Positions 2,097-59,698 are shown, numbered from the stretch's first letter. The stretch: DNA of 64,000 nucleotides from Isurus oxyrinchus (GCA_026770705.1 JANJGN010000838.1:62001-126000), one strand, 5' to 3'. Notes: generated from the sequence alone by a model not told the origin. Program-made: numbers and translations.

Positions 2097-2378
2097 ACAC
2101 ACCACAGAATCTCTCAATTAATTCTCTTGATATGATTAACGCTTCATCAATCAATATAATTGAGGGGAATTCTGCAGTGATAATCTGCTCCGTCGAGAGC
2201 TTCCCAGCTTCTAACCTGACGTGGCGACATCTTAATGTCCCAATGAACAGAACAAGTTCCAACAATGAGCTGTGGTTGGTGATTCCTCACGTTACATCCA
2301 GGGACACTGGAGACTATCAGTGTGTGGCAGAGAATGAACATGGAGCAGTGGAGGGATTTATAACCATCACTGTGGAAT
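2097..2378 (+). CDS. Gene A (5' part outside window): membrane-proximal Ig C2-type exon of a Siglec-like receptor
   Basis: ttttcag|AC...GAA T|gtgagt, 282 nt, phase 1-1; TPQNLSI...IICSVESFPASNLTW...DTGDYQCVAENEHG. Confidence 0.88.
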
Positions 2379-2414
2379 GTGAGTTACACAGAGTTGAACG
2401 TTCTCTTGTTGTTA

Positions 2415-3450
2415 GCTCATGGGATGTGGGCATTGTTGACAAGACCAGAAATTATTGCCCATCTGTAACTGCCCCTTGAGAAGGTGGTGGTGAGCTGCCT
2501 TCTTTAACCACTACATTCCCTGTGGTGTAGGTACACCCTCAGTGCTGTTAGGGTGGGAGTTCCAGGATTTTGTCCCAGTGATGGTGAAAGAACGGCCAAT
2601 ATATTTCCAAGTCCCAGGGCAGACCACCACCTCAAGTTCGCTTCCAAATCACACACCTCACTGACTTGGAACTGTCTTGGTGGAAGAGGTTAAGAGTTTG
2701 GAAGGTGCTGTCGAAGGAGCCTTGGTGAGTTGCTGCAGTGCATCTTGTAGATGGTGCACACACTGCTGCCATTGTGTGCCATTGGTGGAGGGTATGAATG
2801 TTTATGCTGGTGGATGGGCTGTCGATCAAACAAGCTGCTCCTGGATGGTGTCGAGCTTCTTGAGTGTTGTTGGAGCTGCACTTATTCAGGCAATTGGAGA
2901 TTATTCCATCACACTCCTGACTTGTGCCTTGTCGATGGTGGACAGGCTTTGGGGGGTCAGGAGGTGAGTTACTCACCGCAGAGTTCCCAGCCTCTTACCC
3001 GCTCTTGTAGCCACATTATTTCCTGTTGCTGGGTTGTTGCCAGGGCCAATAGCCTTTGCTGTATCCAGTATCATCAGCTAATTGCTGATGTCACGTGGAG
3101 TCAATCGAATTGTCTGAAAGCTGACATCTGTGATGCTGGGACCCTCTGGAGGAGGCCGAGATGGATCATCCACTCAGCACTTCTGGCTGAACATGGTTGC
3201 CAATGCTTCAGCCTTGTCGTTTGCACTGATGTGCTGAGCTCCCCCATCATTAAGGATGGGGATATTTGTGGAACATCCTCCTCCTGTTAGATCTTTAATT
3301 GTCCATCACCATTCATGACTGGATGTGGCAGGACTGCAGAGCTTAGATCTGACCCGTTGGTTGTGGGATCGCTTTGCTCTGTCTATAGCATGTTGTTTCC
3401 GCTGTTTGGTGTGTATGTAGTCCTGTGTGTCACCTCAGCAGCTTGGCACC
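2415..3450 (-). mobile_element. Non-LTR retrotransposon (LINE) ORF2/3' fragments
   Basis: Minus strand matches the 'MEYSP..WMSAAPTTLKKLDTIQ' RT C-terminal region seen in other copies; duplicated at 50670-51710. Confidence 0.7.
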
Positions 3451-3644
3451 TCTGTTATATGTGAATCCTCCTTATAGAAACCTGGATGTACATGGATATT
3501 ATCAATAAATATTACATAGATAAATGTTATTTGTATAGACCTTTCATGCATAGACAATATCACTTCACAAGTTCAGAATTACTACATGTACATAGGGAAC
3601 CATTCTCAAACTGTACCGGAGTCATTCATTGGCTGATTTTACAG

Positions 3645-3741
3645 GGCGAGATTCCAATGAATGGAAAGCAGGATTGCTTGGAGCTGGAATCTGTTTGAGT
3701 GTTGGACTGAGTGGATTCTTCATCTTCAAGTGTGTGAGAAA
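3645..3741 (+). CDS. Gene A transmembrane exon (uncharged TM core)
   Basis: ttttacag|GG...AGA AA|gtaagt, 97 nt, phase 1-2; RDSNEWKAGLLGAGICLSVGLSGFFIFKCVRK. Confidence 0.85.
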
Positions 3742-5095: not shown

Positions 5096-5200
5096 AAGAG
5101 AGGCGAGGTGAAAGCAGGAATCAAATCGAACCATCGTGTTGATGAATATCGAGGTCCTGTTTATGAAAACTGTGAGCGTGGTTGGGCTTTGAGGAATCAG
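5096..5200 (+). CDS. Orphan cytoplasmic-tail exon with YEN motif
   Basis: ctctattacag|AAG...CAG|gtgagt, 105 nt, phase 0-0; KRGEVKAGIKSNHRVDEYRGPVYENCERGWALRNQ; homologous to 6482 exon. Donor lies in LINE-like sequence so the 3' end is uncertain. Confidence 0.55.
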
Positions 5201-5329: not shown

Positions 5330-6384
5330 AACACCGTTCAGAATCAATAATCAAACCCCGTTCAGTATCAATAATCAAACCCCGTTCAGAATCAATAATC
5401 AAACCCCGTTCAGAATTAATAATCAAACACCGTTCAGAATCAATAATCAAACCCCGTTCAGTATCAATAATCAAACCCCTTTCAGAATCAATAATCAAAC
5501 ACTGTTCAGAATCAATAAACAAACCCCGTTCAGTATCAATAATCAAACTCCGTTCAGGTTCAATAATCAAACACCGTTTAGAATCAATAATCAAACCCCG
5601 TTCAATGTCAATAATCAAACCCCATTCAGTATCAATAATCAAACTCCTTTCAGAATCAATAATCAAACCCAGTTCAGTATCAATAATCAAACCCAGTTCA
5701 GTATCAATAATCAAACCCCTTTCAGGATCAATAATCAAACTCCGTTCAGAATCAATAATCAAACCCCGTTCAGTGTCAATAATCAAACCCCGTTCAGTAT
5801 CAATAATCAAAACCCGTTCATAATCAATAATCAAACCCCGTACAGTTTCAATAATCAAACCCCGTTCAGAATCAATAATCAAACCCCGTTCAGTGTCAAT
5901 AATCAATCCCCGTTCAGTATCAATAATCAACCCCCGATCAGTATCAATAATCAACCCCCGTTCAGTATCAATAATCAAACCCCGTTCAGTATCAATAATC
6001 AACCCCCGTTCAGTGTCAATAATCAAACCCCATTCAGTAACAATAATCAAACCCCGTTCAGTATCAATAATCAAACCCCGTTCAGTATCAATAATCAAAC
6101 CCCGTTCAGTATCAATAATCAAACCCCGTTCAGAATCAATAAACAAATCCCATTCAGTATCAATAATCAAACCCCGTTCAGTATCAATAATCAAACCCCG
6201 TTCAGTATCAATAATCAAACCCCGTTCAATATTAATAATCAAACCCCGTTCAGTATCAATAATCAAACCCTGTTCAGTATCAATAATCAAACCCCATTCA
6301 GTGTCAATATTCAAACCTTGTTCAGAATCAATAATCAAACCCCGTTCAGAATCAATAATCAAACCCTGTTCAGTGTCAATAATT
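5330..6384 (+). repeat. 24-bp tandem repeat (aataatcaaaccccgttcagtatc)n, ~44 copies
   Basis: Direct reading; 8-aa periodicity INNQTPFS. Confidence 0.95.
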
Positions 6385-6481: not shown

Positions 6482-6598
6482 AAGAAAGATGAGAAGGATC
6501 TGGAAATGAAATCTAACCGCGGAGTCAATCCTGATACAGATGATGATCTTTACGCAAACTGTGATTTTGCCAAGGATTCTGTTTATGGGAATTTATAA
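6482..6598 (+). CDS. Orphan terminal cytoplasmic exon with LYANC and SVYGNL tyrosine motifs
   Basis: ttctattacag|AAG..., phase 0; KKDEKDLEMKSNRGVNPDTDDDLYANCDFAKDSVYGNL*. Confidence 0.65.
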   Translation, partial: KKDEKDLEMKSNRGVNPDTDDDLYANCDFAKDSVYGNL

Positions 6599-9437: not shown

Positions 9438-9799
9438 CAATGATGCTCCTAATGTACTCGAGCCTGGTACACAGGAACTGGGGAAGGCCAATTCAGCCCC
9501 TTTAGCCTTTTACACAGGAACAGGAGGAGGCCCACTCAGCCCCTCGAGCCTATAACACAGGAACAGGAGGAGGCCCATTCAGCCCCCTCAAGCCTGTTAC
9601 ACAGGAATAGGAGGAGGCCCATTCAGCCCCATCAAGCCTGTTACACAGGAACAGGAGGAGGCCCATTCAGCCCAAGCAGAGCGTGTGGGCAGTTCCTCCC
9701 CAGGCAAGCAGTCAGACAGGTCCTGGGTAAGTAACGGATCGATTGGAAATCACGGGGGAAGTTCTGAGGGCTCCTAACACATTGTCCTGTCTTCTAAAT

Positions 9800-10085
9800 C
9801 AGCACCTTAATACTGACCCTTCAACAGTGCGGCACTCCCTCAGTACTGATCCTCTAACAGTGCAGCACTCCCTGATTAATGTCCCTCTGACAGTGCAGTA
9901 CTCCCTCAGTACTGACCCTCCAACAGTGCAGCACTCCCTGATAAATGTCCCTCTGACAGTGCAGCACTCCCTCAGTACTGACCCTCCAACAGTGGAGATC
10001 CCCCTCAGTACTGACCTTACAATAGTACAACACTTGCTCAGTAATGACCATCCGACAGTGCAGCACTTGCTCAGTACTGACACTG
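9800..10085 (+). repeat. 33-bp minisatellite
   Basis: Same unit; paralogous array at 54460-54680. Confidence 0.8.
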
Positions 10086-10493: not shown

Positions 10494-13281
10494 CTTGAGA
10501 GTGAGAAGTGGATGGAATATCTGGGAGTGGACGATGATCGGGAAATCTACTTCCTCTTGTCACTTTCCCAAGGTAATATCATCATCAGCTCAGACAGAAT
10601 TATGTTTAACAGTCTTTGTAAAAGATCATTCTTATCTCTTAATCTCTGAAACCTCCTGCAACTCAACCAAACAACTTCCCAGATCTCTGTGTTACTGCAA
10701 TTCCGGCCTCTTGACCATCCCTCGATTCCCATCACTCCAATACTGGCGGCCGTGCCTTCAGCTGCCTGGGGCCTGAGCTCTGGAATTCACTCCCTAAACC
10801 TCGGGGATGGGGGAGCTCAGAGGGTTTCATTTTACTGAGAATCACCACGACCACATCACAGCTGCAGTCAGAATAGACAGAGAGTCCAGCCCTCACTCTT
10901 CCTGCACAGTTTCACCATAGCAACCACAATATGGAAATTTAAAAATACTGAAAGTTAAACCGAAGCCAAGCCAGTCAGTTTAGAGAGATGAGATGTTTAC
11001 ACAGTTTCTCTGTGTATCTTGTAGACACTGTGTTGGGTGGAAGACTGGCTTCACTAAACAGGGTCCTGAGGACCATGAGCCAATGTAGAATGAACTTGTC
11101 CACTCCTGTGTCCAGGATTCTCTTCCATCCATTATGAAACCTTGGGGAGTTCCTTGTGTGTCCTGTAGATGGTCCACACTGCAGCTACTGTGCCCCAGTG
11201 ATGGAGGGAGTGGATATCGAGTCTAGTGGATCTACAAACCTTCCAGAGTTAAATATTGACATTTCTCTCCCCAGTTGGACTGTCACAAGAGTGGAAAGGC
11301 GACACTCCACGAGAGGTGGCAGCGCAGGAAGGTTCCTGTGTACAGATTCCATGTCATTACAGTTAATCATCACATTTCGTAGGGAGATCACGTGTCGGAA
11401 TCTGGTTGAAAGGAATAGATGGGAACCCTACAGCCTAAATGGTCTATAGCCTTTCACTCCGAGGGTCACAGTCACAGGGATCAAAGATTCCGCCATCGTA
11501 CCCGGCTGTCTGGAGACCTGAAAGATGGCGACTGTTCCCTGATTATAAACAACATCAGACGGAAAGATGCAGGACCTTATTTTTTTCAGAATAGAATTTG
11601 ACAGCAGGAAGAGTTACAGCTACTATCCTGTAACCCAGCTTCACGTTTCTGGTAAGTGCTGTGTTATAATTACTCAACAATTCACATTCAACACTCAATG
11701 GAAATAACACAAACTGTGACGTTTACATATTAACACAAAACACAGCTTATTATAACACACTGTCTGATTCTCAATAACCTGGTGATAGCTTCCAGTTCAG
11801 TCCTAAAGCAACCTCTAATACTCACTTTAATATCAATGATGAAAAGCATTAACTGTATTCTCAGGTTACCACACCCATCAATCTCTCCTGTCCTGTTTAA
11901 AAGTCTGACGTATCGATAAAAGAAAGATGTGCATTTCTGCAGCGCAATTTACCACCTCAGGAGGATCCAAATCCCTTCACAGCCAATGAAATTATTCCTG
12001 AATTGTAGTCACAGATGTTAAACACAGCAGTCAGTTTGTGCACAGCAAGATCCAACAAACCACAATGTAATAAATCACCCAGATCACTGAGGAAATGAGA
12101 AGCCAGTGAACTCAAACCTCTGGTCTGATGAAGAGTCATACGGACTCGAAACGTTAACCCTGTCTTCCTCTCCACTGATACTGTCAGACCTGCTGAGTCT
12201 TTCCAGCAATTTTTGTTTTTGTTTCAGATTTCCAGCATCCGCAGTATTCTGCTTTTAACTCCAATCTCTGGACTGAGCCTCTTCTCTCATCCAGTATTCT
12301 CAATTCACATGTCTCGGAGTGAACGTGTATTAAGCTGAGAGACAGAAACACTACTGCCAAAGAGCAAGAAAATCTTTCCTGATCATTGTAACCTCTCAGT
12401 TCTGATATCATCCTTGTAAAAGTGCTTTCTCTTGTGGGACTGTGATTTCTATTTGAACTGATGCTTCACGTTATATTTGTCTAAAAGGATCCATTCTCTG
12501 TCTGTTAGATTTCACAGATAAACCCACGATATTCCCTGCTGAAATTATTGCAGGAAAGCGTGTGGATGTAAGCTGCACCTTCAACACAACGTGCAATGGA
12601 ACAGCAGCACCTGTCTTAACCTGGGACACTCCCACTGACGTACCTGGATCAGTCTCAAACACTGTAACTCAGCATGGTGTCACTCTGTCCTATACTTCTG
12701 TTCTGACCCTGATCCCATCACTCAAACACCACGGACACAATCTCAGCTGCAGAGTGAGATATCCATCTGTTTCATCGGAGCGGACCCTCGTACTAACTGT
12801 GCAAGGTAATTACATACACCTTTCATTCTACATCAGCACTCCCTCAGCGCAGACCCTCTGACAGTGCAGCCCGTTCTCAGTATCCACATTCTAAGGCCTC
12901 TCTAAGTGCTTCAAAGTCGATAGAAGTTAATTGATCTTTATTTGATTATTGCTGAATGAAGAGACAAGCTGTCTAAACTTTACATCTCGCACACACCATT
13001 CTCCATGGCAACACCTCCACCTGTCAGAGTCCAATTGCCAACCAATCAGCACTCTCTTCCCATTAAGTATAAATTGTTGTTCACTTTCTGTTGATAATCC
13101 TGTGAACGGGCTTCTTGATTCCTGCCATGACATCTGAATGTCCAAATGAACAGAACAAGTTCCAACAATGAGCTGTGGTTGGTGATTCCTCATGTTACAT
13201 CCAGGGACACTGGAGACTATCAGTGTGTGTCAGAGAATGAACATGGAGCAGTGGATGGGTTCATAACCATCAGTGTGGAAC
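10494..13281 (+). pseudogene. Gene B: Siglec-like pseudogene (leader 10494-10572, V 11275-11651, C2 12509-12805, 5'-truncated C2 13129-13281; no TM exon)
   Basis: Leader has a 1-bp deletion (tctac vs tcttac); V exon has TAA at 11364-11366 and further frameshifts including an extra T before the FR motif; last C2 exon lacks its 5' half and acceptor. Confidence 0.85.
12125..12155 (+). ncRNA. Minimal hammerhead-ribozyme-like motif in a Penelope-type terminal fragment
   Basis: CTGATGA-a-GAGTC-atacg-GACTC-GAAA-CGTT; identical copy at 56725-56755. Confidence 0.45.
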
Positions 13282-15719
13282 GTGAGTTACACAGACTTCA
13301 ACATCTCTCTCAGATTTGAACACTACACAAACACCATCGAACATACACACCTAAATAGACACGTGCAGACACACATATATGACCACACACAAAGACACAC
13401 TCACACACAAACACTAACACTCACTCCCTCATGGGTTACCTGACCTCCCTCAGTACTGCATTGGAGGTTGGCCTGAATTCTGGGATTTGTGTTCCCATTC
13501 ATATTTATGGAAGAATATGGAAATTACTATTACAGACACTCAGATGCTTAGAGACACTCACAGATACTCTCTGCGTCTCCAACTCTCTCTCTCCTTTTAA
13601 GAAGCTTCCTGAAACCTAACCCTTTGACGAATCACCAACCCAACTCTTCCTTATCTGATTCTGTGTGATTTTCTTTGTGTATCTGAGAGTAAGAGAGAGT
13701 TGGAGAGGTTTAGGAAGAGAATTCCTGCTGGTGAAAAGCTTACATAATGTTCTCACTATTTCCGTGCACATAATTCCCATTATGTGCAATGCCCCTGTTT
13801 ATAATGATGACTGCCTATGTAAACGTCACGCTGTAGTTACAGCCACCCACCAGTGGTGGCATTGTAGCCCTTAATCCTTGTGTTTCCCAGCTTTCCCAGC
13901 AACTCCACTTCCCAGTTTGCTACACAAGCTGTGAGTTCATCGGAATTCAATTATTTCTCAAACGGTGGATTTGATGTCATTTTATTGAAAACTTCCTCAG
14001 CGCCTCCCTGAAGGGTTTACACTCTCCGGGTGGCAGGAATAGGCTGGATGTTGGGGAGTTCATCTTTTCCCAGAGAGTAGGGATCCTCGGGAATGTGCTG
14101 TCAGTGGGTGTGGTGGTTGCTGTTTCTCTGTCACCTTCAAGAGGGATCTGGAGTGGTTACTGACTGGGGGAGAGATCATGGAAGCGGAGAATGATACAGC
14201 ACAGGAGGAGGCCATTCAGCCCATTGAGCCTGTGCCAGGTCTTTCAATGTGCTATCCCATCAGATCCACTAACCACCACTCCACTTTGCCCCCATCTTCC
14301 TCCTTCAAGTGTTTATCCAATTTCCCTTTTGAAAGTTCCTATTGAATCTACTTCCACCGCCCTTTCAGGCAGCACCTTCCAGATCACAACAACTCATTCT
14401 GTCAAAACAAATTCTCCTCATCTCCCCCTCCAGTTCGTCAATCTGTGTCCCTCTGGTTACCGACCCTCCTGCCCCTTAAATACATCGATACTGTTCACCT
14501 CAACCACTCCCTGTGGGAGCGAGTTCCACATTCTCCCCTCTCTCTGGGTAAAGATTGGAACTGTTTATTAAGCGGGGGGTGTTAGTCCGTGGGGGAGTCC
14601 ATCTCAATCCTGCCCGATTGAGCCAGTGAGCCAGTGTACAAACTCACACCAAGTCCCATTCACCCATCACCTCTGTGCTTACTGATACACACTGGCTCCC
14701 TGTCTGACAGCAGAATTGGAGGAGAGCAGAGATCTCAGAGGTTTTTAGGGTTGGAGGAGGTTACAGTGATAGAGAGTGTAGAGGGGGGATGGTGGGGTAA
14801 GAAATCAATGATGAGAATTTGAAATTTGAGTCATTGCTGGACTGAGAGTTAGTGTAGGTCAGCCAGTGACAGGGCAGCGATCGGCTGAATAGAAAATCAG
14901 GGATAAAAACTGGGGGATGAGGTCTACCCTGATGTTAGGACTCGGATAACAATGCCCTGAAACTTCGTGTCTTTTGCTGATTTTAGTCAGAATTTCCCAT
15001 GAAGACAACACAGCAGCTCCTAGAATAGACAGGCTGTTCAGTGTCACTCTTCCTGTCCATTCTCACCATGCTAGATACTTCAATAAGGGAGCAAGATAAC
15101 TGAAAGAGACAAGGGAGGCAAAGCTGTCTGTGTGTAGAACTGTCAAATATTCTGAGTTATCATAATTGTCTCTGACCTGCTGCAGAGTTTAAATTTCACA
15201 GAACATTAGCACTTTGCAGCTCAGAGAGAGACCATTGACTCACTGCCTGAAAGGGCGGTGGAAGCAGATTCAACAGGAACTTTCAGAAGGGGAACTGGAT
15301 AAATACTTGAAGAGGACATTTTGCAGGGCTGTGGAGGAGAGAGCAGAGGTGAGAGTGGGACTAATTGGACAGATATTTCAAAGGCCCAGCACAGGCTCGA
15401 TGAGCCAAATGGCTTCCTTTTGTTCCCGATCATTCGACAATCTGATAAATTAAGCCCCACATCAATAACTCTTAAGGCTCCAGCTGCAGGGATGGATCTT
15501 TGAGAAGGACAGGGAACAAGAGGTTTCTGATATCATTTTCAATTTTATTGACAATTAGATAACAGTATAGATTTGTTGAATATTTGAGTCTCTAAAGAGT
15601 AGAGGTAATCTGCACTTACGCCCAGATCTTGTGGTAGTAACCTTGTCTGGAGGTGTCTTTAAATGCTCACAGTGATCTGTGGGATTGTCATTCTTGGATG
15701 TTCTCCCTGGTTTCAATTG

Positions 15720-44650: not shown

Positions 44651-44659
44651 GTAAGTATG

Positions 44660-46075: not shown

Positions 46076-46174
46076 TACCTATTCTACATCAGCTGTGATA
46101 GTCATGACTTTGCACAGCAAGATCCCACAAACTGCTCTCTGTTTAGCAACAGATCACCTATCTGATAAAAATTC

Positions 46175-47232: not shown

Positions 47233-47882
47233 CATTGCCGAGTGAGTGCTGCTCTGTCTGAGAATTATCACTTGTATCAAAATGTTTTTAACTTTACTGT
47301 TGTTCCCACTTCAGCTGCAACTGCTCCACATCCCCATGTGTTAACTGGAGCATGTCAGCCTGGAGTTACGTGGAATTGCAGAGCAGAATCTGCTCTCACA
47401 CATTGAAGCTGGCAATCGCTAAGTGTCCCTCAGTGATGATGTTTTCTGATGGAATGAAACTTGGCAAAGCCGTGGGTAGTGATAAGGAGAGATTGGGCAT
47501 GAGAGGGGCAGGATCAGGGTGAGGTGGGCAGACACATGGCTGATGCAGTTCAGCGCAGTGTCGTGTGAAGTGACGCACTTTGTCAGGATGAATACAGACA
47601 GATATTGGACAGTAATGATTTGGACAGGTGTAGGTGAGCAGAGACCTGGGCGTCTCTCTGCACACATTCTGAAAGATTAAAGGACAACTTGTTGAGGTGA
47701 TGAAGAAAGAAAATGTCTTCCTTGTGTTAACAGACTGAGGAACCGAGTTAAAAGCAAAGAGATCATGCGGGAACTTTATAAATCACTGGTTAGAACTCAG
47801 CTGGAATATTGTTCAGAACGCTGGGCCTCCACACTTCAGGAAAGATGTAAGAGCTTCAGACAGGGTGTCCAAGAGGACAAAA

Positions 47883-48235
47883 CAGTAAAAACTGGGACAT
47901 AAGAGTCCTGCTCCAAACTGGTCTTGTATAGCTTAACGTATAACACCAGTAAAACTGGGAAATAAGAGTACTGCTCCAAACTGGTCTTGTATAGCTTAAT
48001 ATAAAACACCAGTAAAACTGGGAAATAAGAGTCCTGGTCCAAACTGGTCTTGTATAGCTTAATATAGAACACCAGTAAAACTGGGAAATAAGAGTCCTGG
48101 TCCAAACTGGTCTTGCATAGCTTAATATAGAACAACAGTAAAACTGGGAAATAAGATTACTGGTCCAAACTAGTCTTGTATAGAATAATATAGAACACCA
48201 GTAAAACTGCGAGATAAGAGTACTGATCTGAACTG
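47883..48235 (+). repeat. 63-bp tandem repeat, ~5.5 copies
   Basis: cagtaaaactgggaaataagag...ttaatatagaacac units starting 47883, 47947, 48010, 48073, 48136, 48199. Confidence 0.88.
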
Positions 48236-48249
48236 ATTTTTTGCTTCTG

Positions 48250-48720
48250 GGTGGAGAAGAGATTGAGCAGAAGGGGTCCAGGGATGAAGGATTTTAGCTA
48301 CAAGGTTGGGTTGGAGAAGCTGGGGTTGTTCTCCTTGGAACAAAGGAGATTGAGGGGGGATCTGATCGAGGTGTACAAGATGATGATGGGTTTAGATACG
48401 ATAGACAAAGAGAAGCTATTGCCATTAGCTGATGGTACAAGGACTGGGGGACACAGATTGAAGGTTTTGTGCAGAGGGAGTGATGTGAGGAGGAACTTTT
48501 TTATAGAGTGAGTGGTAATGAGCTGGAACTCGCTGCCTACGAGGATGGTGGAAGTGGAGACGATGAACGATTTCAAAAGGAAATTGGACGGACACTTGGA
48601 AATAAACTTGCAGGGATACGAGGACAGAGCGGGGGGAATGGGACTGAGTGGATTGCTCTACAGAGAAACAGCATGAACTGGATGGGCCAATGGCCTCCTT
48701 CTGTGTTCTGAGTGTCTGTG
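48250..48720 (+). mobile_element. CR1-type LINE 3' fragment
   Basis: LEKLGLFSLEQRRLRGDLIEVYK; near-identical inverted copy at ~59815-60300. Confidence 0.85.
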
Positions 48721-48796
48721 ACCCTATTGAAAAATCAGAGGACAAATCCAAATTGTTTTCTGCTTGTCAGTTAACATCTGGAACTTTCTATTCCAG

Positions 48797-49084
48797 TTGC
48801 TCCAGATAAGCCAGTTATTGTGCTCCTGAAGGATTTACAGGAGGGGACTCCTGCACATATCATCTGTAAATGCCTCTACACCTGCCCTGATAACCACCCC
48901 AATCTAACCTGGAGTGAATTGCTGACTTCCTCGGTCAGCACCATCACAGAGAACGGTGGTGATGTTTCCGCTCCACTGACCTTTAACCCTTCGTTCAAGC
49001 ATCATGGACGAACTCTCTGCTGTACGTGTGACTACTCTCAAACCAGCCATCGAGTGGTCAACTCAGTTACTCTGAGTGTAAAGT
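48797..49084 (+). CDS. Gene D C2 exon 2 (a second domain-2-like, Cys-rich domain)
   Basis: ttccag|TT...AAG T|gtaagt, 288 nt; APDKPVI..ICKCLYTCPDNHPNLTW..FKHHGRTLCCTCDY. Confidence 0.85.
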
Positions 49085-49592
49085 GTAAGTATTGGTTAGA
49101 ACATCCTGCTTGTGATGGAGGGGGAGTCAGTCTCCTACTAAATCAGGCATTGGAGAAGGTGCAAGTGGGATTGACAAGGATGATTCCAGAACTGAGAGGT
49201 TATAACTATCAGGAAAGACTGAACAAGCTGGGCTTCTTTTCTCTAGAAAAGAGAAGGCTGAGGGGGTGACCTGATCGAGGTCCTTAAAATGGTGAAAGGG
49301 TTTCGATAGGGTAGATGTGGAGAAGATGCCTCCACTTGTCGGAGTGACGAAGAGTTAGGGGCCATCAATATAAGATCATCACTAATAAAATGGTGCACAC
49401 TGCAAACAATGTGCGTTCATGGTGGAGGGAGTGAATGTTGAAGATGGTGGGTGGGATGCCAATCAATCGGGCTGCGTTGTCCTGGATGGTGTCGAGCTTC
49501 TTGAGTGTTGTTGGAGCTGCACTCATCCCGGCAACTGGAGAGAATTCCATCACACTCAGTGTTTAATGTGTTGATAATTTTGTATTTGAAAG

Positions 49593-49850
49593 ATTCTCCT
49601 CACAACACATCTGTCAGGCTGACACTGGAAAAAGGAAAGGTGATTTCTCTAAGTTGTTCCAGTGACGAGAATCCAGCAGTCCACAATTTCACCTGGTTTA
49701 AGATCTCCCAAGGAAAGGTGACGAATCTGGCGCTCGCTGGTCAAACTATTACAGTTCCTTCTGGATTCGATGAGGAAATCTCCTACTACTGTGAAGCAAC
49801 AAGTATCCTGGGCAGTTCCCAGTCTCTGCCCATTAGAATTCCCACTGAAT
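49593..49850 (+). CDS. Gene D C2 exon 3 (CD22/sialoadhesin-like)
   Basis: gaaag|AT...GAA T|gtgagt, 258 nt; YSPHNTSV..LSCSSDENPAVHNFTWFK..YYCEA. Confidence 0.85.
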
Positions 49851-50355
49851 GTGAGTAATTTCAATCCTGACTTTTAAACAATTCCACATCTTGTCCAAAC
49901 TCCGAGGTGAACCAAATCTCCCCTTGGGTGTTGCTGAAAACATGCTGTCGAAGGTTTCAGTCTCGTCAGGACAGAGTCACGAGAAAACCCAATCTCAAAG
50001 GGAACAGCCATTTCTGATGCGGGGGAAGAGGGCGTGCTGATTGGCTGGCAAGTCGACATTTCTCCACAGTTTGTTCACAATTCTCAGTGATGGTCACCAT
50101 GAAACTACCAGATTGTTGTAAAAACCCTTCAGTACTGTCCCTCCAACAGTGCAGATCTCCCTCGCTACTGACTCTCTGATAGTGTAGCACCCTCTCAGTA
50201 CTGACCTTCTGACATTGCAGGACTCCCTCAGTACTGAACTGAAGTGTCTGCCTGAATTAAGTTCTTTGTGGTGAAGGAACCTACATTGATATCACACCTT
50301 TCACATTCTCAGGGTCTCTCAAAGTGTTTCACAGTCAATGTAAGTAACTGATCAG

Positions 50356-50637
50356 ACACACCACAGAATCTCTCAATTAATTCTCTTGATATAATTAACG
50401 CTTCATCGATCAATATAATTGAGGGGAATTCTGCAGTGATAATCTGCTCTGTCGAGAGCTTCCCAGCTTCTAACCTGACGTGGCGACATCTTAATGTCCC
50501 AATGAACAGAACAAGTTCCAACAATGAGCTGTGGTTGGTGATTCCTCACGTTACATCCAGGGACACGGGACACTATCAGTGTGCGGCAGAGAAGGAACAT
50601 GGAGCAGTGGAGGGATTTATAACCATCTCTGTGGAAC
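50356..50637 (+). CDS. Gene D C2 exon 4 (ORF intact, weakened acceptor)
   Basis: 282 nt paralogue of 2097-2378; polypyrimidine tract deleted. Confidence 0.72.
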
Positions 50638-50669
50638 GTGAGTTACACAGAATTGAACATTCTTGTGTT

Positions 50670-51710
50670 ATTAGCTCATGGGATGTGGGCATTGTTGACA
50701 AGACCAGAAATTATTGCCCATCTGTAACTGCCCCTTGAGAAGGTGGTGGTGAGCTGCCTTCTTTAACCACTGCAGTCCATGTGGTGTAGGCACACCCACA
50801 GTGCTGTTAGGGAGGGAGTTCCAGGATTTTGTCCCAGTGATGGTGAAGGAACGGCCGATATAGTTCCAAGTCACAGGGCAGACCACCACCTCAAGTTCAC
50901 CTCCAAATCACACACCACACTGACTTGGAACTGTCTTGGTGGAAGAGGTTAAGAGTTTGGAAGGTGCTGTCGAAGGAGCCTTGGTGAGTTGCTGCAGTGC
51001 ATCTTGTAGATGGTGCACACTGCTGCCATTGTGTGCCAGTGGTGGAGGGTATGAATGTTTATGCTGGTGGATGGGCTGTCGATCAAACAAGCTGCTCCTG
51101 GATGGTGTTGAGGTTCTTGAGTGTTGTTGGAGCTGCACTCATCCAGCCAAGTGGAGATTATTCCATCACACTCCTGACTTGTGCCTTGTCAATGGTGGAC
51201 AGGCTTTGGGTGGTCAGGAGTTGAATTACTCACCACAGAGTTCCCAGCCTCTGACCCGCTCTTGTAGCCACATTATTTCCTGTTGCTGGGTTGTTGCCAG
51301 GGCCAATAGCCTTTGCTGTATCCAGTATCATCAGCTGATTCCTGATGTCACGTGGAGTCAATCGAATTGTCTGAAAGCTGACATCTGTGATGCTGGGACC
51401 CTCTGGAGGAGGCCGAGAAGGAGCATCCATTCAGCACTTCTGGCTGAACATGGTTGCCAATGCTTCAGCCTTGTCGTTTGCACTGATGTGCTGAGCTCCC
51501 CCATCATTAAGGATGGGGATATTTGTGGAGCATCCTCCTCCGGTTAGATCATTAATTGTCCATCACCATTCATGACTGGATGTGGCAGGACTGCAGAGCT
51601 TAGATCTGACCCGTTGGTTGTGGGATCGCTTTGCTCTGTCTATAGCATGTTGTTTCCGCTGTTTGGCGTGTATGTAGTCCTGTGTGTCACCTCAGCAGCT
51701 TGGCACCTCT
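50670..51710 (-). mobile_element. LINE fragments (duplicate of 2415-3450)
   Basis: Near-identical sequence in the same intron position. Confidence 0.72.
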
Positions 51711-51901
51711 GTTATATGTGAATCCTCCTTATAGAAACCTGCATGTACATGGATATTATCAATAAATATTACATAGATAAATGTTATTTGTATAAATCTT
51801 TCATGCATAGACAATATCACTTCACAAGTTCAGAATTACTACATGTACATAGGGAACCATTCTCAAACTGTACCGGAGTCATTCATTGGCTGATTTTACA
51901 G

Positions 51902-51998
51902 GGCGAGATTCCAATGAATGGAAAGCAGGATTGCTTGGAGCTGGAATCTGTTTGAGTGTTGGACTGAGTGGATTCTTCATCTTCAAGTGTGTGAGAAA
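51902..51998 (+). CDS. Gene D transmembrane exon
   Basis: Same 97-nt sequence as 3645-3741. Confidence 0.85.
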
Positions 51999-52609
51999 GT
52001 AAGTGTGAAGGTTTAATTGGTTGTTTTCGAAAATGTTTTCTTCAAACTTCTCTCCTTATAGAAAGAACTTTCATTTCTATAGCACCTTTTACAACCCAAA
52101 CCCCTTCACAGCCCCTGAAGAATTTTGATGTTCACCTACTGTTTAACATCTCATCCAACACTCAATGTTTCACAACTCAGACCTGTAACAGGCAGTGTTG
52201 ACCCGGACCATAAGATACCTTGTGACCTACTGAGGATGTGAAAGGTGCTATATAAATGAAAACCTTTCTTTTGTTAGTGAATGCAATCTCTTTCCTTTTT
52301 CCATGTTTCATTCACTCTCTCTTATCTCCACTAATGTTGGCCTTCTCATTCTCTCTCTCTCTCATTCACTCTCTCTCCAATCTCCACTAACACTCTATTT
52401 CTCATTCTCTCTCTCATTCACTCTCTCTCTTATCTCCACTAATGCTCTCCTTCTCATTCTCGCTCTCATTCACTCTCTCTCCAGTCTCCACTAATGCTCT
52501 CCTTCTCATTCTCTCTCTCATTCACTCTCTCTCCTATCTCCACTAATGCTCTCCTTCTCATTCTCTCTCTCGTCCTCTTACACAATGTTCAGTATCTCAC
52601 ATTTTTAAG

Positions 52610-52670
52610 GAGCGCTGAGCAACATCTGCTCCTTCAGAAGATCCACCTCAACACCTGGAGTGAGCAGTGA
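52610..52670 (+). CDS. Gene D putative terminal exon, short Tyr-free tail
   Basis: KSAEQHLLLQKIHLNTWSEQ*; the eight exons of D total 1692 nt = 563 aa + stop. Confidence 0.55.
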
Positions 52671-53357
52671 ATTGAAACTCGCTCACCAACTGCTCAGCTT
52701 TACACAGGAATCACGTCACAGAGTCAGGACACAAAGGGTTAACAGTTTGTTTACAACACAACACTAAGGCCCTACGTTTCAGTGAAAGGGTTTTCACAAT
52801 TGTTCCCCAATTCCTGATTTTACTCACAGAGAAACATCAACCCTTTCTCATTAAATACACAGAGGGAGCAGCACAGGAAGAGGTCATTCAGCCCAAGCAG
52901 AGCGTGTGGGCAGTTCCTCCCCAGGCGAGTAGTCGGACAGGTCCTGGGTAAGTAACGGAACGACTGGAATTCACTTCCACGACCAACACCATCCTTTGTT
53001 GATGTTGTGACTTTATAAAGACAGATTCCAATAACTGATGCCTTTGAAAGATTTCTACTGATTATTGAGATCTGGGTGTGAGGCTCAAGTCTGTTGTACA
53101 GAACATTTTTCTAGCTCAAGGGATGAGGGAAGAGCAGGGACATGAGCTTTGGGGTGTCCTGAGGTGGTGAAAGGCGATATAGAAATGCAAGTCCTTCATT
53201 GTTTTACTTTCTTAAAGCCTTGTAACTCTCTGCAGAGCACATATCATCCCACAGAGAATGAAATTAGTCTGTGAAGACATTGTCTAAAAGCAGTTCTGAT
53301 CTCTCGAGAGGTGTCGGACAAGAGGTGAGGTCTCGTTAACTCATTTCTCTTTCACAG

Positions 53358-53430
53358 CTTGAGAACCAATGAAATACCTGGGAGTGGGCAATGATCAGGA
53401 AATCTTACTTCCTCCTGTCACTTCTCCAAG
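53358..53430 (+). pseudogene. Orphan signal-peptide exon (ATG 53391, MIRKSYFLLSLLQ) with no V exon behind it
   Basis: ttcacag|...CAA G|gtaata; followed by rearranged intron pieces and then a second leader. Confidence 0.65.
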
Positions 53431-55447
53431 GTAATATCATTGTCAGCTCGGACAGATTTATGGCTAATCATCTTTGTAAAACATAATTCTTATTGAGCTC
53501 TGATTGGGAACAGATTCAGGAGTGAGCCAGTGTACAATCTCACACCAAGTCCCATTCACCCATCACCCCTGTGCTCACTGATATACACTGACTCCCTGTC
53601 TGACAGCAGAATTGGTGGAGAGCAGAGGACTTTGAGGTTTGCATGGTTGGAGGAGAAAGTGATTGGAGAAGAGGAATGGAGGGAATGGAAATTGAGGATG
53701 AGAATCTTAAACTCGAGGCTCTGCTGGACTGGGAGCCAGTGCAGGTCAGCGAGTGGCGGAAGGCGTGAGGTGTTGAGTTGAGAAACAGTGATAAATACTG
53801 GGGGATGAAGTCTATCCTGATGCTTGGACTCCGATAGCAAAGGAATGAAATTTGTGTTTTTTGCTGATTTTAGTCAGAATTTCCCATGAAGACAACACAG
53901 CAGCTCCTAGAATAGACAGGCTGTTCAGTGTCACACTTCCTGTCCATTCTCACCATGCTAGATACTTCAATAAGGGAGCAAGATAACTGAAAGAGAGAAG
54001 GAAGGTAAAGCTGTCCGTGTGTAAAGGTGTCAATATTCAGTTTGCATATTTGTCTTTCTCTCGACACATGCAGAGCTCAGGCTAGAGGCGCTTTGTTAGT
54101 GTGTTTCACAGTGTCTGCTGGAGTAGGGTCAGTGCTGAGCTTGGGGATAAGTCAGTCTACAATGCTGCATCGGAATCAACAATACAACAATATGGGGTTT
54201 GGATCAGAAATAATCCCTCAGACAATGAGGATCCAAAGAGATTCCTTAGACAATGAGGATCCAAAAAGATTCCTTAGACATGAGGATCCAAAGAGATTCC
54301 TTAGACAATGAACATACAAAGTGCACCAATGATAGTGAATCAGATTAGCCAATCAGCTGTGTTGAAGAGCAGACAGGAATGTTAGGCTAATTAGTGATTC
54401 ATGACGGTGATAATGGGGGGAGTTCTGACGGCTCCTAATCCATTGTCCTGTCTTGTAAATCAGCACCTTAATACTGACCCTCCAACAGTGCAGCACTCCC
54501 TCAGTACTGATCCTCCAACATTGCAGCACTCCCTGATTAATGTCCCTCTGACAGTGCAGCACTCCCTCAGTACTGACCCTGAAACAGTGGAGATCTCCCT
54601 CAGTACTGACCTTACAATAGTGCAACACTCGCTCAGTAATGACCATCCGACAGTGCAGCACTTGCTCAGTACTGACACTGGGGAGTTTCAGTCTACTCTG
54701 TGGGGCAGACGTCCCCTGAATCGGGTCTTGAATCCCACAACATTCTGACCCCCTGAATTTGGCTGTGAAACCCACTGACCCACAGGAGAAACTCCTGGTC
54801 AATGACTGTCCACCTGTGAGCAGAAATATCACCACAGGGTCAGGACACAAAGTTCACCAACATCTCAAAACATGAGCTGCTCTGTCACTTTGATCCAACT
54901 TCCTCATTTTGTCTCACAGAGACACATCAACCCTTTCTCACTAAATACACAGAGGGGGCAGCACAGGAAGAGGTCATTCAGCCCAAGCAGAGCGTGTGGG
55001 CAGTTCCTCCCCAGGCGAGCAGTCGGACAGGTCCTGGGTAAGTAACGGAACGATTGGAATTCACTTCCACGACCAACACCGTCCTTTGTTGATGTTGTGA
55101 CTTTATAAAGACAGATTCCAATGATTGATGCCTTTGAAAGATTTCTACTGGTTATTGACATCTGGATGTGAGTCTCAGGTCTGTTGTACAGAACATCTTT
55201 CTAGCTCAAGGGATGAGGGAAGTGCAGAGACATGAGCTTTGGGGCATCCTGAGGAGGTGAAAGGTGCTATAGAAATGCAAATCCTTCATTGATTTTCTTT
55301 CTTAAAGCCTTGTAACTCTCTGCAGAGCACCTATCATCCCACAGAGAATCAAATTCTTCTGTGAAGATATTGTCTAAAAGCTGTTCTGATCTCTTGAAAG
55401 CTGTCGGACAATAGGTGAAGTCTCATTAACTCCTTTCTCTTTCACAG

Positions 55448-57880
55448 CTTGAGAGTGAGAAGTGGATGGACTATCTGGGAGTGGACAATGATCGGGAAAT
55501 CTTACTTCCTCCTGTCACTTCTCCAAGGTAATATCATCGTCAGTATGGACAGATTTATGTTTAACAGTTTTTGTAAAAGATCATTCTTATCTCTTTATCT
55601 CTGTAACGTCCTGCAACTCAACCAAACAACTTCCCAGATCTCTGTGTTACTCCAATTCCGGCCTCTTGACCATCCCCCGATTCCCATCACTCCAATAGTG
55701 GCGGCCGTGCCTTCAGCTGCCTGGGGCCTGAGCTCTGGAATTCACTCCCTAAACCTCGGCGATGGAGGAGATCAGAGGGTTTCATTTTACTGAGAATCAC
55801 CACGACCACATCACAGCTGCAGTCAGAATAGACAGAGAGTCCAGCCCTCACACTTCCTGCACAGTTTCACCATAGCAACCACAATAAAGAAGTAAAATAA
55901 CTGAAAGTTAAACCGAAGCCAAACCAGTCGGTGTAGAGAGATGAGATGTTTACACAGTTTCCCTGTGTATCTTGTAGACACTGTGTTGGGTGGAAGACTG
56001 GCTTCAGTAAACAGAGTCCTGAGGACCATGAGCCAATGTAGAATGAACTTGTCCACTCCTGTGTCCAGGATTCTCTTCCATCCATTGTGAAACCTTGGGG
56101 AGTTCCTTGTGTGTCCTGTAGATGGTCCTCACTGCAGCCACTGTGCCCCAGTGATGGAGGGGGTGGATATCGAGTCTAGTGGATTGACAAACCATCCAGA
56201 GTTAAATATTGATATTTATATTACCCTGTAACCCGGCTTCACGTTTCTGGTAAGTGCTGCGTTATAATTACTCAACAATTCACATCCAACACTCAATGGG
56301 AAATAACACTAACTGTGACGTTTACATATTAACACAAAACACAGCTTATTATAACACACTGTCTGATTCTCAATAACCTGGTGATCGCTTCCAGTTCAGT
56401 CCTAAAGCAACCTCTAATACTCACTTTAATATCAATGATGAAAAGCATTAACTGTATTATCAGGTTATCCATTCCCATCAATCTCTCCTGTCCTGTTTAA
56501 AAGTCTGACGTATCGATAAAAGAAAGATGTGCATTTCTGCAGCGCAATTTACCACCTCAGGAGTATCCAAATCCCTTCACAGCCAATGAAATTATTCCTG
56601 AATTGTAGTCACAGATGTTAAACACAGCAGGCAGTTTGTGCACAGCAAGATCCAACAAACCACAAGGTGATAAATCACCCAGATCACTGAGGAAATGAGA
56701 AGCCAGTGAACTCAAACCTCTGGTCTGATGAAGAGTCATACGGACTCGAAACGTTAACCCTGTCTTCCTCTCCACTGATACTGTCAGACCTGCTGAGTCT
56801 TTCCAGCAATTTTTGTTTTGGTTTCAGATTTCCAGCATCCGCAGTATTCTGCTTTTAACTCCAATCTCTGGTCTGAGCCTCTTCTCTCATCCAGTATTCT
56901 CAATTCACATGTCTCGGAGTGAACGTGTATTAAGCTGAGAGACAGAAACACTACTGCCAAAGAGCAAGAAAATCTTTCCTGATCATTGTAACCTCTCAGT
57001 TCTGATATCATCCTTGTAAAAGTGCTTTCTCTTGTGGGACTGTGATTTCTATTTGAACTGATGCTTCACGTTATATTTCTCTAAAAGGATCCATTCTCTG
57101 TCTGTTAGATTTCACAGATAAACCCACGATATTCCCTGCTGAAATTATTGCAGGAAAGCGTATGGATGTAAGCTGCACCTTCAACACAACGTGCAATGGA
57201 ACAGCAGCACCTGTCTTAACCTGGGACACTCCCACTGACGTCCCTGGATCAGTCTCAAACACTGTAACTCAGCATGGTGTCACTCTGACCTATACTTCTG
57301 TTCTGACCCTGATCCCATCACTCAAACACCACGGACACACTCTCAGCTGCAGAGTGAGATATCCATCTGTTTCATCGGAGCGGACCCTCGTACTAACTGT
57401 GCAAGGTAATTACATACACTTTCATTCTACATCAGCACTCCCTCAGCGCTGACCCTCTGACAGTGCAGCCCATTCTCAGTATCCACATTCTAAGGCCTCT
57501 CTAAGTGCTTCAAAGTCGATAGAAGTTAATTGATCTTTATTTGATTATTGCTGAATGAAGAGACAAGCTGTCTAAACTTTACATCTCGCACACACCATTC
57601 TCCATGGCAACACCTCCACCTATCAGAGACCACTTGCCAACCAATCAGCACTCTCTTCCCATTAAGTATAAATTGTTGTTCACTTTCTGTTGGTAATCCT
57701 GTGAACGGGCTTCTTGATTCCTGCCCTGACATCTTAATGTCCCAATGAACAGAACAACTTCCAACAATGAGCTGTGGTTAGTGATTCCTCACATTACATC
57801 CAGGGACACTGGAGACTATCAGTGTGTGGCAGAGAATGAACATGGAGCAGTGGAGGGATTCATAACCATCACTGTGGAAC
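55448..57880 (+). pseudogene. Gene E ectodomain: leader (ATG 55488-55527), V exon deleted (remnant 56219-56249), intact C2 57109-57405, 5'-truncated C2 57728-57880
   Basis: Paralogue of gene B block; intron 'gatattt' joins directly to the last ~31 nt of a V exon. Confidence 0.75.
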
Positions 57881-59558
57881 GTGAGTGTACACAGACTTCA
57901 ACATCTCTCGCAGATTCGAACACGACACAAACACCCTCAAACATACACATCTAAGTAGACACATGCAGACACACATATATGACCACACAGAAAGACACAC
58001 TCACACACAAACACACTAACACACACTCCCCTGTGGGCTACCTGACCTCCCTCAGTACTGCCCTGGAGAGTTGGCCTGAATTCTGGGATTTGTGTTCCCA
58101 TTCATATTTATGCAAGAATATGGAAATTACAAAGTCTATTACAGACAGTCAGATGCATAGAGACACTCACAGATACTCTCTGCCTCTCCAACTCTCTCTC
58201 TCCCTTTAAGAAGCTTCCTGAAAGCTCACCCTTCGAACAATCACCGGTCCCAAATCCTCCTTATCTGATTTGTGTGATTTTCTTTGTGTATTTGAGAGTA
58301 AGCGAGAGGTGGAGAGGTTTAGGAGGAGAATTCCTGTTGGTGAAAAGCTTACATCATGTTCTCACCTTTCCAGTGCCCATATTTTACATGATGTCCAATG
58401 TCCTTGTTCATAATGGGAATTGCCTATGTAAACATCACGCTGTAGTTACAGTCTCCTACCAGTGGTGGCATTGTAGCACTTAATCCTTGTGTTTCCCAGC
58501 TTTTCAAGCAACTCCACTTCCCAGTTTGCTCCACAAGCTGTGAGTTCATTGGAATTCAATTATTTCTCAAACGGTAGATTTGATGCCATTTTATTGAAAA
58601 CTTCCTCAGTGCCTCCCTGAAGGGTTTACACTCTCTGGGAAGCAGGAATAGGCTGGATGTTGGGGAGTTCATCTTTTCCCAAAGAGTAGTGATCCTCGGG
58701 AATGTGCTGTCAGTGGGTGTGGTGGTTGCTGATTCTCTGTCGCCTTCAAGAGGGATCTGGAGTCATTACTGACTGGGGGAGAGATCATGGAAACGGAGAA
58801 TGATACAGCACAGGAGGAGGCCATTCAGTCCATTGTGCCTGTGCCAGGTCTTTCAATGTTCTATCCAATCAGATCCAATAACCACCATTCCAATTTGCCA
58901 CCATCTTCCTCCTTTAAGTATTTATCCAATTTCCCTTTTGAAAGTTCCTATTGAATCTGCTTCCACCGCCCTTTCAGGCAGCACCTTCCAGATCACAACA
59001 ACTCGCTCTGTCAAAACAAATTCTCCTCATCTCCCCCTTCGGTTCGTCAATCTGTGTCCCTCTGGTTACCGAGCCTCCTGCCCCTTAAGTACATTGATAC
59101 TGTTCACCTCAACCACTCCCTGTGGGAGCGAGTTCCACATTCTCCCCTCTCTCTGGGTAAAGATTGGAACTGTTTATTAAGTGAGGCCTGTAAGTCCGTG
59201 GGGGAGTCCATCTCGATCCTGCCCGATTCGTACACGCGTCCGAGATGGATTTCCACCCTGCACTAAACGTTTCCAGAATTTTCTACAGCACAATCCTGTA
59301 CACAACGATTGGGAGAAACATTGGACAGGGAGTCCAACAGCACAATGATCCATTCTCACCAATGTTCCACGCTAAGGGGAAAGTTCCGATTGTCCACTCT
59401 TAGAGTGTTTACAATGAAAACATTCATTCCACATTGAATCCCAGTGGATGGGTCAATAATACAGCAAATGTTGCAGTGATATGAAGCTTGATTGTTCAGC
59501 CAGAGTGAGAGATTGAAAGCGGAGAGTCAGTGATGATTTCTTTCTGTGTGTTCTCTAG

Positions 59559-59698
59559 ACAGTGGAGGAGAGATTCTGCACGTGATCCTGATCCTGGGAA
59601 TACGAGCTGTGATATTCCTTGTGGCTGTGGTTATCACTATCGCTGGAGTCTGTGTCTGGGAGAGACAAACAGTGAAAGCAAGTCGACAGACTGTTTGA
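59559..59698 (+). CDS. Activating-type TM/short-tail exon with intramembrane Arg
   Basis: ttctctag|AC, phase 1; SGGEILHVILILGIRAVIFLVAVVITIAGVCVWERQTVKASRQTV*; Arg codon 59603-59605; frame not listed in the ORF track. Confidence 0.8.

Follow-up and report, generated by a model that had tools for sequence, protein, structure and literature searches.

Probable part of a tandemly duplicated Siglec-family receptor gene cluster with three tail modules in the shark Isurus oxyrinchus

A stretch of 64,000 nucleotides (nt) of the Isurus oxyrinchus genome (GCA_026770705.1 JANJGN010000838.1:62001-126000; hereafter the window, with coordinates counted from its first letter) is considered here. The window is probably a piece of a large, tandemly duplicated and transposon-rich cluster of Siglec-family immune receptor genes, in which modular exons are combined with three tail modules and which evolves by birth and death. 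An earlier reading made from the DNA alone (the sequence-only reading) had proposed a paired-receptor system at this site. In the present analysis, the pairing of inhibitory and activating receptors would seem to be a property of the family rather than a demonstrated working pair at this locus.

Five tandem gene units, namely A (partial), B, C, D and E, were recognized, with all Siglec-type exons lying on the + strand when the window's own open frames and shark proteins served as queries in tblastn searches. Inspection of each border revealed canonical AG..GT boundaries throughout. The immunoglobulin (Ig) exons are of phase 1/1 and have lengths divisible by three (V, 366-387 nt; C2a, 297 nt; other C2 types, 282, 288 or 258 nt), and a 40-nt exon that ends in a phase-1 donor encodes the leader (MIGKSYFLLSLLQ). 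The Siglec-type exons in the window are real. Translated exons found their best matches among predicted shark proteins (Carcharodon carcharias, 88%; Scyliorhinus canicula, 75%), none of them identical, in line with the earlier assignment of the DNA to a probable shark and pointing to a species near Carcharodon and Cetorhinus.

In the model proposed here, genes would be assembled from interchangeable phase-1 Ig exons, comprising one to several V exons with the sialic-acid arginine, C2a and optional further C2 exons, and each gene would be closed by one of three modules, termed type I, type II and Arg-TM. Type I would consist of an uncharged transmembrane (TM) segment and a CD33-like tyrosine pair (LLYAN[P/I] ... 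TEYAQI) predicted to recruit SHP phosphatases. Type II would consist of another uncharged TM segment followed by YENC, YANC and a terminal SVYGNL, which may serve in docking of the Grb2 type and of the ITIM type (ITIM denoting immunoreceptor tyrosine-based inhibitory motif). Arg-TM would present an arginine within the TM segment and almost no tail, and could couple to an ITAM (immunoreceptor tyrosine-based activation motif) adaptor chain. The cluster would turn over by birth and death, with duplication units that stretch from one gene's tail to the leader of the gene that follows. C2a and the adjoining intron would be held 95-100% alike by gene conversion or recent duplication, and the V exons would retain two deeply diverged patches, in the C-C' region and the G-strand loop. 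Each module has counterparts among shark protein models (type I: P0010, P0020, P0131 and P0025; type II: P0071, P0079 and P0060; Arg-TM: P0001, P0002, P0036, P0037, P0056 and P0074).

The family is clearly Siglec, of the MAG/CD33 sort, as judged by comparison with proteins of known structure. When the V exon at 43566-44033 was compared with all PDB chains by phmmer, the best 18 matches were Siglecs without exception, with E values from 2.5e-14 (Siglec-5) to 5e-9, and included Siglec-5, Siglec-7, Siglec-8, MAG, CD33, Siglec-10, sialoadhesin and Siglec-15; pIgR and JAML came next, at E 4e-8 or weaker. In the alignment, YFFRIE falls on YFFRVE of Siglec-5, which contains the essential arginine, SCVQIPC falls on LCVLVPC, and W13 falls on W2 of sialoadhesin. 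Given these matches and the aligned arginine and cysteines, the V domains lie within the Siglec family, the outcome on which the sequence-only reading had depended. The arginine motif Y[FY]FRIE is found in all intact V exons of the window, designated V23, V27 and V43 by position, and the cysteine pattern SCVQIPC ... DCSL is found by sequence in V23 and V27, with V43 having serine at the E-strand position. The ectodomain matches V-set and Ig_CD22 in Pfam, and among named Atlas clusters 'CD33' is nearest (0.98), a lead only. A V-C2 profile built from eight shark proteins scored 104 bits against Siglec-5, 101 against CD33, 99 against MAG, 98 against Siglec-10, 91 against Siglec-8, 57 against Siglec-15 and 45 against CD22 in the PDB, scores that cannot decide between a MAG-like and a CD33-related placement.

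It is quite unlikely that these proteins have the Siglec fold and yet play no role as sialic-acid receptors, instead recognizing protein or other ligands with the arginine persisting as a relic. Such a reading could draw on the V domains differing most in the C-C' and G-strand patches, on the V-V and V-V-V arrays of P0011, P0017 and P0021, an arrangement not known among mammalian Siglecs, none of which is known to have more than one V domain, and on V43, which lacks a structural cysteine, with binding being read from sequence only. Set against these points, Y[FY]FRIE is kept in all intact V exons of the window and in those V domains of sharks that were inspected, the A-strand tryptophan and, by sequence, the three-cysteine pattern are likewise kept, and each strong PDB match is a sialic-acid-binding Siglec. 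A Siglec family predicted to bind sialic acid remains the preferred reading.

The type I module is represented by gene C, whose parts are as follows.
23409-23795, + strand: V1 exon of the first-position type (VGLSQEW..), with a loop insertion in common with Cetorhinus P0011
27442-27807, + strand: V2 exon of the internal type (AEPSQEW..), with the YYFRIE arginine (V-set match, borders, V tree)
28179-28475, + strand: C2a exon (Ig match, canonical borders)
28657-29901, no strand assigned: degenerate (AC)n array in an intron of gene C, containing both assembly gaps (28823-29084 and 29286-29701; repeat comparison)
30980-31076, + strand: uncharged TM exon (donor and borders, shark protein matches)
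32184-32265, + strand: first cytoplasmic exon (RKTATQERVSGTSDIALTPSPLSVKHQ; shark protein matches, borders)
34075-34323, + strand: last exon, encoding NLLYANP and TEYAQI (86% identity with the Carcharodon P0010 tail)

The coding exons of gene C are intact. The uncharged TM segment with an LLYANP/TEYAQI tail that had been predicted for this gene is indeed encoded by the exons at 30980-31076, 32184-32265 and 34075-34323, and the arrangement of its two cytoplasmic exons is the same as in Carcharodon P0010 and P0020. The tail exon is 76-86% identical to proteins of Cetorhinus maximus and Carcharodon. It found no match in a local copy of Pfam that does not contain PF27822 (SIGLECL1_C). A HMMER search of 1.84 billion representative proteins returned 11 matches; all ten for which a name was looked up are from sharks, such that no match beyond sharks was seen among those ten. 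The loop insertion of V1 is also present in Carcharodon P0131. Because the start of V1 (VGLSQEW) resembles that of leader-following V domains and the start of V2 (AEPSQEW) resembles that of the internal V domains of P0017, P0018 and P0021, the reading of gene C as a tandem V-V gene fits the models of other sharks. Tandem arrays of two or three V domains occur in the shark models P0011, P0017, P0018, P0021 and P0036. The (AC)n array begins 182 nt past the C2a donor and ends some 1.1 kb before the TM acceptor; with both gaps thus inside an intron, no reading frame must cross them. A leader for gene C was sought between 13 and 23.4 kb by blastn, by motif search and by scanning for an ATG followed by a hydrophobic stretch and a phase-1 donor, and none that was convincing was found.

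The type II module was recognized in gene A, the 5' end of which lies beyond the window.
2097-2378, + strand: C2x Ig exon, 282 nt (Pfam Ig_3/I-set; borders ag|..|gtgagt), a 94.7% nt copy of 50356-50637
3645-3741, + strand: uncharged TM exon (GRDSNEWKAGLLGAGICLSVGLSGFFIFKCVR) with a phase-2 donor, matching the TM segments of P0071 and P0047
4496-4580, + strand: middle cytoplasmic exon (GSSTGRGHSAQAERVGSSSPGEQLDRYW; KGSSTGRGHSAQAERVGSSSPGEQLDRYW; tblastn with P0047, P0071 and P0060; borders)
5096-5200, + strand: cytoplasmic exon X1 (..DEYRGPVYENCERGWALRNQ; ..PVYENC..; P0079 and P0060; borders)
6482-6598, + strand: last exon X2 (..DDLYANCDFAKDSVYGNL-stop; ..DLYANCDFAKDSVYGNL-stop; P0071 and P0079; borders)

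Gene A is intact as far as it is visible within the window. Type I cytoplasmic exons were sought downstream of the TM exons of A and D and were not found, and it was thus that the type II tail came to light. The order TM, middle exon, X1 and X2 is the same in Stegostoma P0079, Carcharodon P0071 and Mustelus P0060; the exons at 5096-5200 and 6482-6598, which the sequence-only reading had taken for orphan tail exons with YxN and SVYGNL motifs, are therefore the tail of gene A itself. This second tyrosine-bearing tail type contains YENC, YANC and SVYGNL; the YxN motif occurs in it three times, and S-x-Y-x-x-L stands at its end. In genes A and C and in unit D, the uncharged TM exons share the end AGAAA|GTAAGT, a phase-2 donor without a stop codon; reading through this donor gives a lysine followed by a stop, which probably was the source of the short tails assigned earlier to A and D. 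The assignment of an uncharged TM segment with a short, tyrosine-free tail thus fails for A, which has a tyrosine tail, and holds for D, through truncation by a TAG codon. Gene A as a signal-less receptor was ruled out, since its TM donor leads into a four-exon tail with tyrosine motifs. The intron between X1 and X2 is filled by a 24-bp tandem repeat (5330-6383; some 44 copies, about 90% alike).

The Arg-TM module closes unit E.
55488-55527, + strand: leader exon (leader scan, borders)
about 56218-56249, + strand: 3' remnant of the V exon (alignment to unit D)
57109-57405, + strand: C2a exon (Ig match, contigs, borders)
57730-57918, + strand: 3' half of C2x, a remnant skipped in the spliced form (tblastn, contigs)
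59559-59698, + strand: terminal exon encoding an Arg-containing TM segment and a 12-residue tail (joint 57405>59559 in four runs; borders)

The last of these exons, found once in the window, reads DSGGEILHVILILGIRAVIFLVAVVITIAGVCVWERQTVKASRQTV-stop and encodes the TM segment ..ILILGIRAVIF.. and a 12-residue tail free of tyrosine (ERQTVKASRQTV). The C-terminus of Carcharodon P0001 matches this exon at 89% identity, and that of S. canicula P0002 at 82%. In Carcharodon and Scyliorhinus, the conserved exon closes proteins of V-C2a (P0001, P0002, P0056 and P0037), V-V-C2a (P0036) and long multi-Ig (P0074) architecture. The Arg-TM exon, then, is a real terminal exon that, from its occurrence in these models, behaves as a cassette. 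The Arg-containing TM segment with a short tail predicted earlier was recovered at exactly 59559-59698 and is conserved in two shark genera; a basic TM residue and a short, tyrosine-free tail, as expected of an activating partner, are accordingly present here.

Splicing at this position was considered using Logan contigs of four runs, three of one organism and one of a second, placed on 55400-59900. Contigs of all four runs contain a GT..AG joint 56249>57109, from the V donor to C2a (slack +1), and a GT..AG joint 57405>59559, from the C2a donor to the Arg-TM acceptor (slack +2). Both joints lie at exactly the predicted borders, with the short side of each measuring 21-29 nt. The sequence-only reading would have fallen had no transcript linked a Siglec ectodomain exon to the Arg-TM exon; the RNA-like contigs with the joint 57405>59559 show such a link. 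Contigs leaving the leader donor at 55527 enter a V-exon start that is absent from unit E. Over the C2x remnant (57665-57966), contig depth in run X1 is very high, and the contigs, all of which depart from the window at 57780, continue into a full C2x; paralogues elsewhere that contain C2x seem to be strongly represented in that sample.

At the level of the family, pairing is seen in other sharks. Within a species, the ectodomains of Arg-TM and ITIM-type models are closely alike (P0002/P0039, 86.8% over 235 residues; P0036/P0025, 91% over 300 residues; P0074/P0024, 85.5% over 248 residues), and a single Carcharodon contig carries both an Arg-TM model (P0001) and a type I model (P0010). In a quick tree of 59 V domains, few branches of which are well supported, the domains closest to V43 are those of Carcharodon P0036 and P0037 (91%), both Arg-TM proteins, and catshark Arg-TM proteins fall in V clades with ITIM-tailed proteins of their own species. 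In the window, only unit E carries the Arg-TM exon, and the equivalent of 43575-43922, comprising the V acceptor and nearly the whole V exon, is missing from unit E, with no run of N at that point. Its sister, unit B, is a pseudogene. Near-identical ligand-binding domains in two partners are not found here, given that E has no V exon and that the V exons are 71-82% identical. The window thus contains no intact pair, and a working inhibitory/activating pair is not supported at this site. Of the paired-receptor system proposed earlier, what survives is the family-level claim, as seen in the models of other sharks and the spliced contigs; the claim of a working pair here is not supported, with E devoid of a V exon and B a pseudogene. 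The parts of units B and D that bear on this point are as follows.
10534-13301, + strand: unit B pseudogene, with leader 10534-10572 (39 nt, 1-bp deletion), V 11275-11651, C2a 12509-12805 (intact) and the 3' half of C2x at 13131-13301
40423-40462, + strand: unit D leader exon MIGKSYFILSLLQ (leader scan, borders)
43585-43953, + strand: unit D V exon (V43), with E-strand Cys replaced by Ser
44354-44650, + strand: unit D C2a exon (Ig match, borders)
48797-49084, 49593-49850 and 50356-50637, + strand: further unit D Ig exons C2y, C2z and C2x, respectively (Pfam/tblastn, borders)
51902-51998, + strand: unit D uncharged TM exon, the same as that of A (donor, borders)
52863-52947, + strand: unit D middle cytoplasmic exon, cut short by a TAG at 52930-52932

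In unit B, the V exon (377 nt) is frameshifted and spread over three frames; an Arg-TM exon was sought 3' of this unit and was not found. Unit D carries five Ig exons, V, C2a, C2y, C2z and C2x, of which C2y has no close counterpart among the shark proteins fetched. A change of CAG to TAG at 52930-52932 leaves unit D with a 23-residue tail free of tyrosine; its short tail is thus the result of truncation. Neither X1 nor X2 was found between the middle exon of unit D and the next leader. V43 reads DGDSSL (43820-43840), where all other copies and homologues inspected read DGDCSL; the serine replaces the E-strand cysteine of the intrasheet disulfide, at a position aligning with a cysteine of Siglec-5. 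Some 12 nt of the pyrimidine tract found in gene A are missing before C2x of unit D (gtaagtaactgatcag|AC; 50330-50356 as compared with 2070-2097), and the acceptor of this exon is probably weak.

That the window nonetheless holds a working pair, either because the loss of V from unit E is an artefact of assembly or haplotype or because transcripts from the leader and V exon of unit D (40423 and 43585) reach the Arg-TM exon, is unlikely. The closeness of V43 to the V domains of Carcharodon P0036 and P0037, the 95-98% identity of D and E upstream of V and through C2a, and the presence in contigs of both V-to-C2a and C2a-to-Arg-TM joints speak for such a pair. Yet the missing segment of unit E includes the acceptor and is not replaced by a run of N, all contigs depart from the window at 57162, V43 lacks the E-strand cysteine, and no contig listed joins 44650 to 59559. 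Pairing as a feature of the family, without a working pair in this window, hence remains the favored interpretation.

Several points nevertheless weigh against the reading of the window as part of a modular Siglec cluster with three tail modules, as set out above. Sialic-acid binding, phosphatase and Grb2 docking, and adaptor coupling are predictions based on motifs and on what is established for mammalian Siglecs. In gene C, the proximal motif LLYANP carries a proline at +3 and is not a canonical ITIM; the same motif is LLYANI or LLYASI in paralogous shark proteins, and the distal TEYAQI of gene C fits an ITIM-like distal motif. That the two halves of gene C form one gene across the gaps is inferred from the orthologous models P0020, P0131 and P0011, which have the same exon order, and the chain from C2a (44650) to C2y (48797) of unit D, 4.1 kb apart, is inferred only. 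The four runs are guessed to be RNA, with the exon-exon joints being the argument. Every contig has G at 57162, where the window has A; the source of the spliced RNA joining C2a to Arg-TM may therefore be a paralogue or a different allele, and not unit E. Lastly, the defects in units D and E might reflect errors in this assembly or variants that it contains.

The history of the ectodomain exons was considered by aligning four units (B, C, D and E) over a segment that starts upstream of V and ends past C2a. In the V-proximal half of the V-C2a intron, all pairs of units are 95-98% identical, and the C2a exons are 97-99% identical at the nucleotide and 96-98% at the amino acid level, with synonymous divergence (dS) of 0.01-0.07. 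The V exons are 80-87% identical at the nucleotide and 71-82% at the amino acid level, with dS of 0.29-0.40 and nonsynonymous divergence (dN) of 0.11-0.22. Between the C2x exons of A and D, five replacements are seen in 92 codons. Followed in 60-nt steps, V divergence is concentrated in two patches that are 53-82% identical, namely 43640-43760 (the C-C' region) and 43880-43939 (before the G strand), and the E-F framework between them is 92-95% identical. Within these two patches, dS reaches about 1 or more with dN/dS below 1, as compared with a dS of 0.13-0.16 elsewhere in V. The patches would therefore seem to be ancient sequence variants that were retained, not the product of recent point mutation. 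Their surroundings have been homogenised or recently copied. As such, the near-identity of ectodomain exons claimed in the sequence-only reading holds for C2a (96-98% of residues) and for C2x of A and D, but not for V (71-82% of residues). Similarly, the homogenisation of ectodomains proposed there is visible in the V-adjacent intron and in C2a, but affects the stalk and not the ligand-binding V.

It is very improbable that the repeated units are assembly artefacts, that is, false duplicates or collapsed copies of fewer genes. Two gaps, many satellites and copies that are 93-98% alike would favor this explanation, but the V exons differ by 13-20% at the nucleotide level, transposon insertions, deletions and flanks differ as well, and comparably large clusters are found on long contigs of related sharks. 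True tandem duplication is accordingly retained as the explanation for the units.

Stray copies of the type II middle exon at 9664-9726, 39880-39972 and 54945-55037 precede the leaders at 10534, 40423 and 55488, respectively, by 450-540 bp; they mark the limits of the duplication unit, which therefore stretches from a gene's tail as far as the following leader. The Cetorhinus model P0047 seemingly reads from a stray middle exon into the next gene. One further leader, mapped with unit E, stands alone.
53391-53430, + strand: intact leader exon (MIRKSYFLLSLLQ) with a good donor and without a V exon before the next leader, 2.1 kb downstream

The G+C content of the window is 42-50%, and fragments of long interspersed nuclear element (LINE) reverse transcriptase and a 33-bp minisatellite are abundant. 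Fragments of the former type lie on the + strand at 15968-18346, 37797-38341 and 44967-45284, between units and in the intron 3' of C2a of unit D; assignment to Pfam RVT_1 covers 16501-17640 and 44967-45281 only. The minisatellite forms seven arrays in both orientations (1-540, 1544-1966, 9754-10084, 33278-33926, 46173-47262, 54415-54676 and 61122-61673), 77-95% alike, that are found inside and between receptor units, with one frame reading ..STDPLTVQHSL..; it could serve as a substrate for unequal exchange.

To place the family more broadly, a profile search returned 157 relatives, and among the 120 matches listed essentially all are from sharks, skates or rays (two being without a name), annotated by the NCBI pipeline as CD33-like, MAG-like or Siglec-5 to -15. 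A literature search on shark Siglecs revealed no paper describing the family, and a search on DAP12 or FcR gamma in cartilaginous fish returned nothing relevant. Whether the system is undescribed had been left unconfirmed in the sequence-only reading; it is so in the literature searched but not in databases, where RefSeq already gives more than 120 elasmobranch relatives names such as CD33-like and Siglec-14; as far as was seen, the family is present in databases and undescribed in print.

The ancient Siglec set is considered to consist of Siglec-1, -2 (CD22), -4 (MAG) and -15 (PMC9630641), and a study of teleosts reported fish genomes to be without CD33-related Siglecs (PMC7226832). The family described here is either ancient kin of the mammalian CD33-related Siglecs or a separate expansion. 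Tentatively, and with considerable doubt, elasmobranchs might have kept an ancestral CD33-type system, with an ITIM and TEY tail and a charged-TM counterpart, that predates the split between cartilaginous and bony vertebrates and was lost in teleosts; selection would then keep the hypervariable C-C' and G-loop patches in a cassette-like manner, with conversion homogenising the remaining ectodomain. Sharks and rays carry a large CD33-like receptor family with inhibitory-type, second-type and Arg-TM modules, from which it follows that modular inhibitory/activating receptors are either far more ancient than supposed or evolved on two occasions. The local mosaic also offers a concrete case of how a receptor cluster may share a stalk and yet retain ligand diversity, the C2 exon and intron being homogenised and the V loops deeply diverged. 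The value of this particular window is limited, in that several units are damaged and the family is already in RefSeq.

Among known systems, KIR, LILR and the teleost NITR and LITR families likewise form tandem clusters with birth-and-death turnover, exchange of ITIM-tail and charged-TM cassettes, and variable ligand-binding domains, but belong to other Ig lineages. The CD33-related Siglecs (CD33, Siglec-5, -7, -8 and -10) share with the shark family a V-set domain with an F-strand arginine and, by sequence, the cysteines of a B-E pair plus one more, a second domain of the C2 set, and genes with one phase-1 exon per domain arranged in tandem clusters. Tails of human CD33-related Siglecs, in which a proximal [L/I]xYAxx is followed by a distal TEY[A/S]x[I/V], may also be comparable to the shark tail. 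By contrast, MAG scores as high as CD33, the shark tail has no significant match beyond sharks among those looked up by name, and shark members include proteins with two or three tandem V domains, a second tail type (YENC, YANC, SVYGNL) and, in gene C, LLYANP.

The paired primate receptors Siglec-5/14 (PMC4042635) and Siglec-11/16 (PMC5701461) offer the same combination of an ITIM-type partner and a basic-TM, short-tailed partner with related ectodomains and signs of homogenisation between neighbors. In those pairs, it is the ligand-binding V domain that is homogenised and extremely similar (PMC5701461), whereas in the shark window C2a and the intron are homogenised and V is 71-82% identical, the local Arg-TM unit is without V, and partners in other sharks are 85-91% identical overall. 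The RefSeq elasmobranch models, among them Carcharodon carcharias XP_041037179.1, Cetorhinus maximus XP_078389734.1 and, for Scyliorhinus canicula, P0002 (a 'Siglec-14 isoform X2' model), belong to the same family and contain the same exon types, with V, C2a, TM and tails 76-91% identical. Those models carry automatic names with no study behind them; the window, from another species, adds to them pseudogenes, deletions and a mosaic of divergence.

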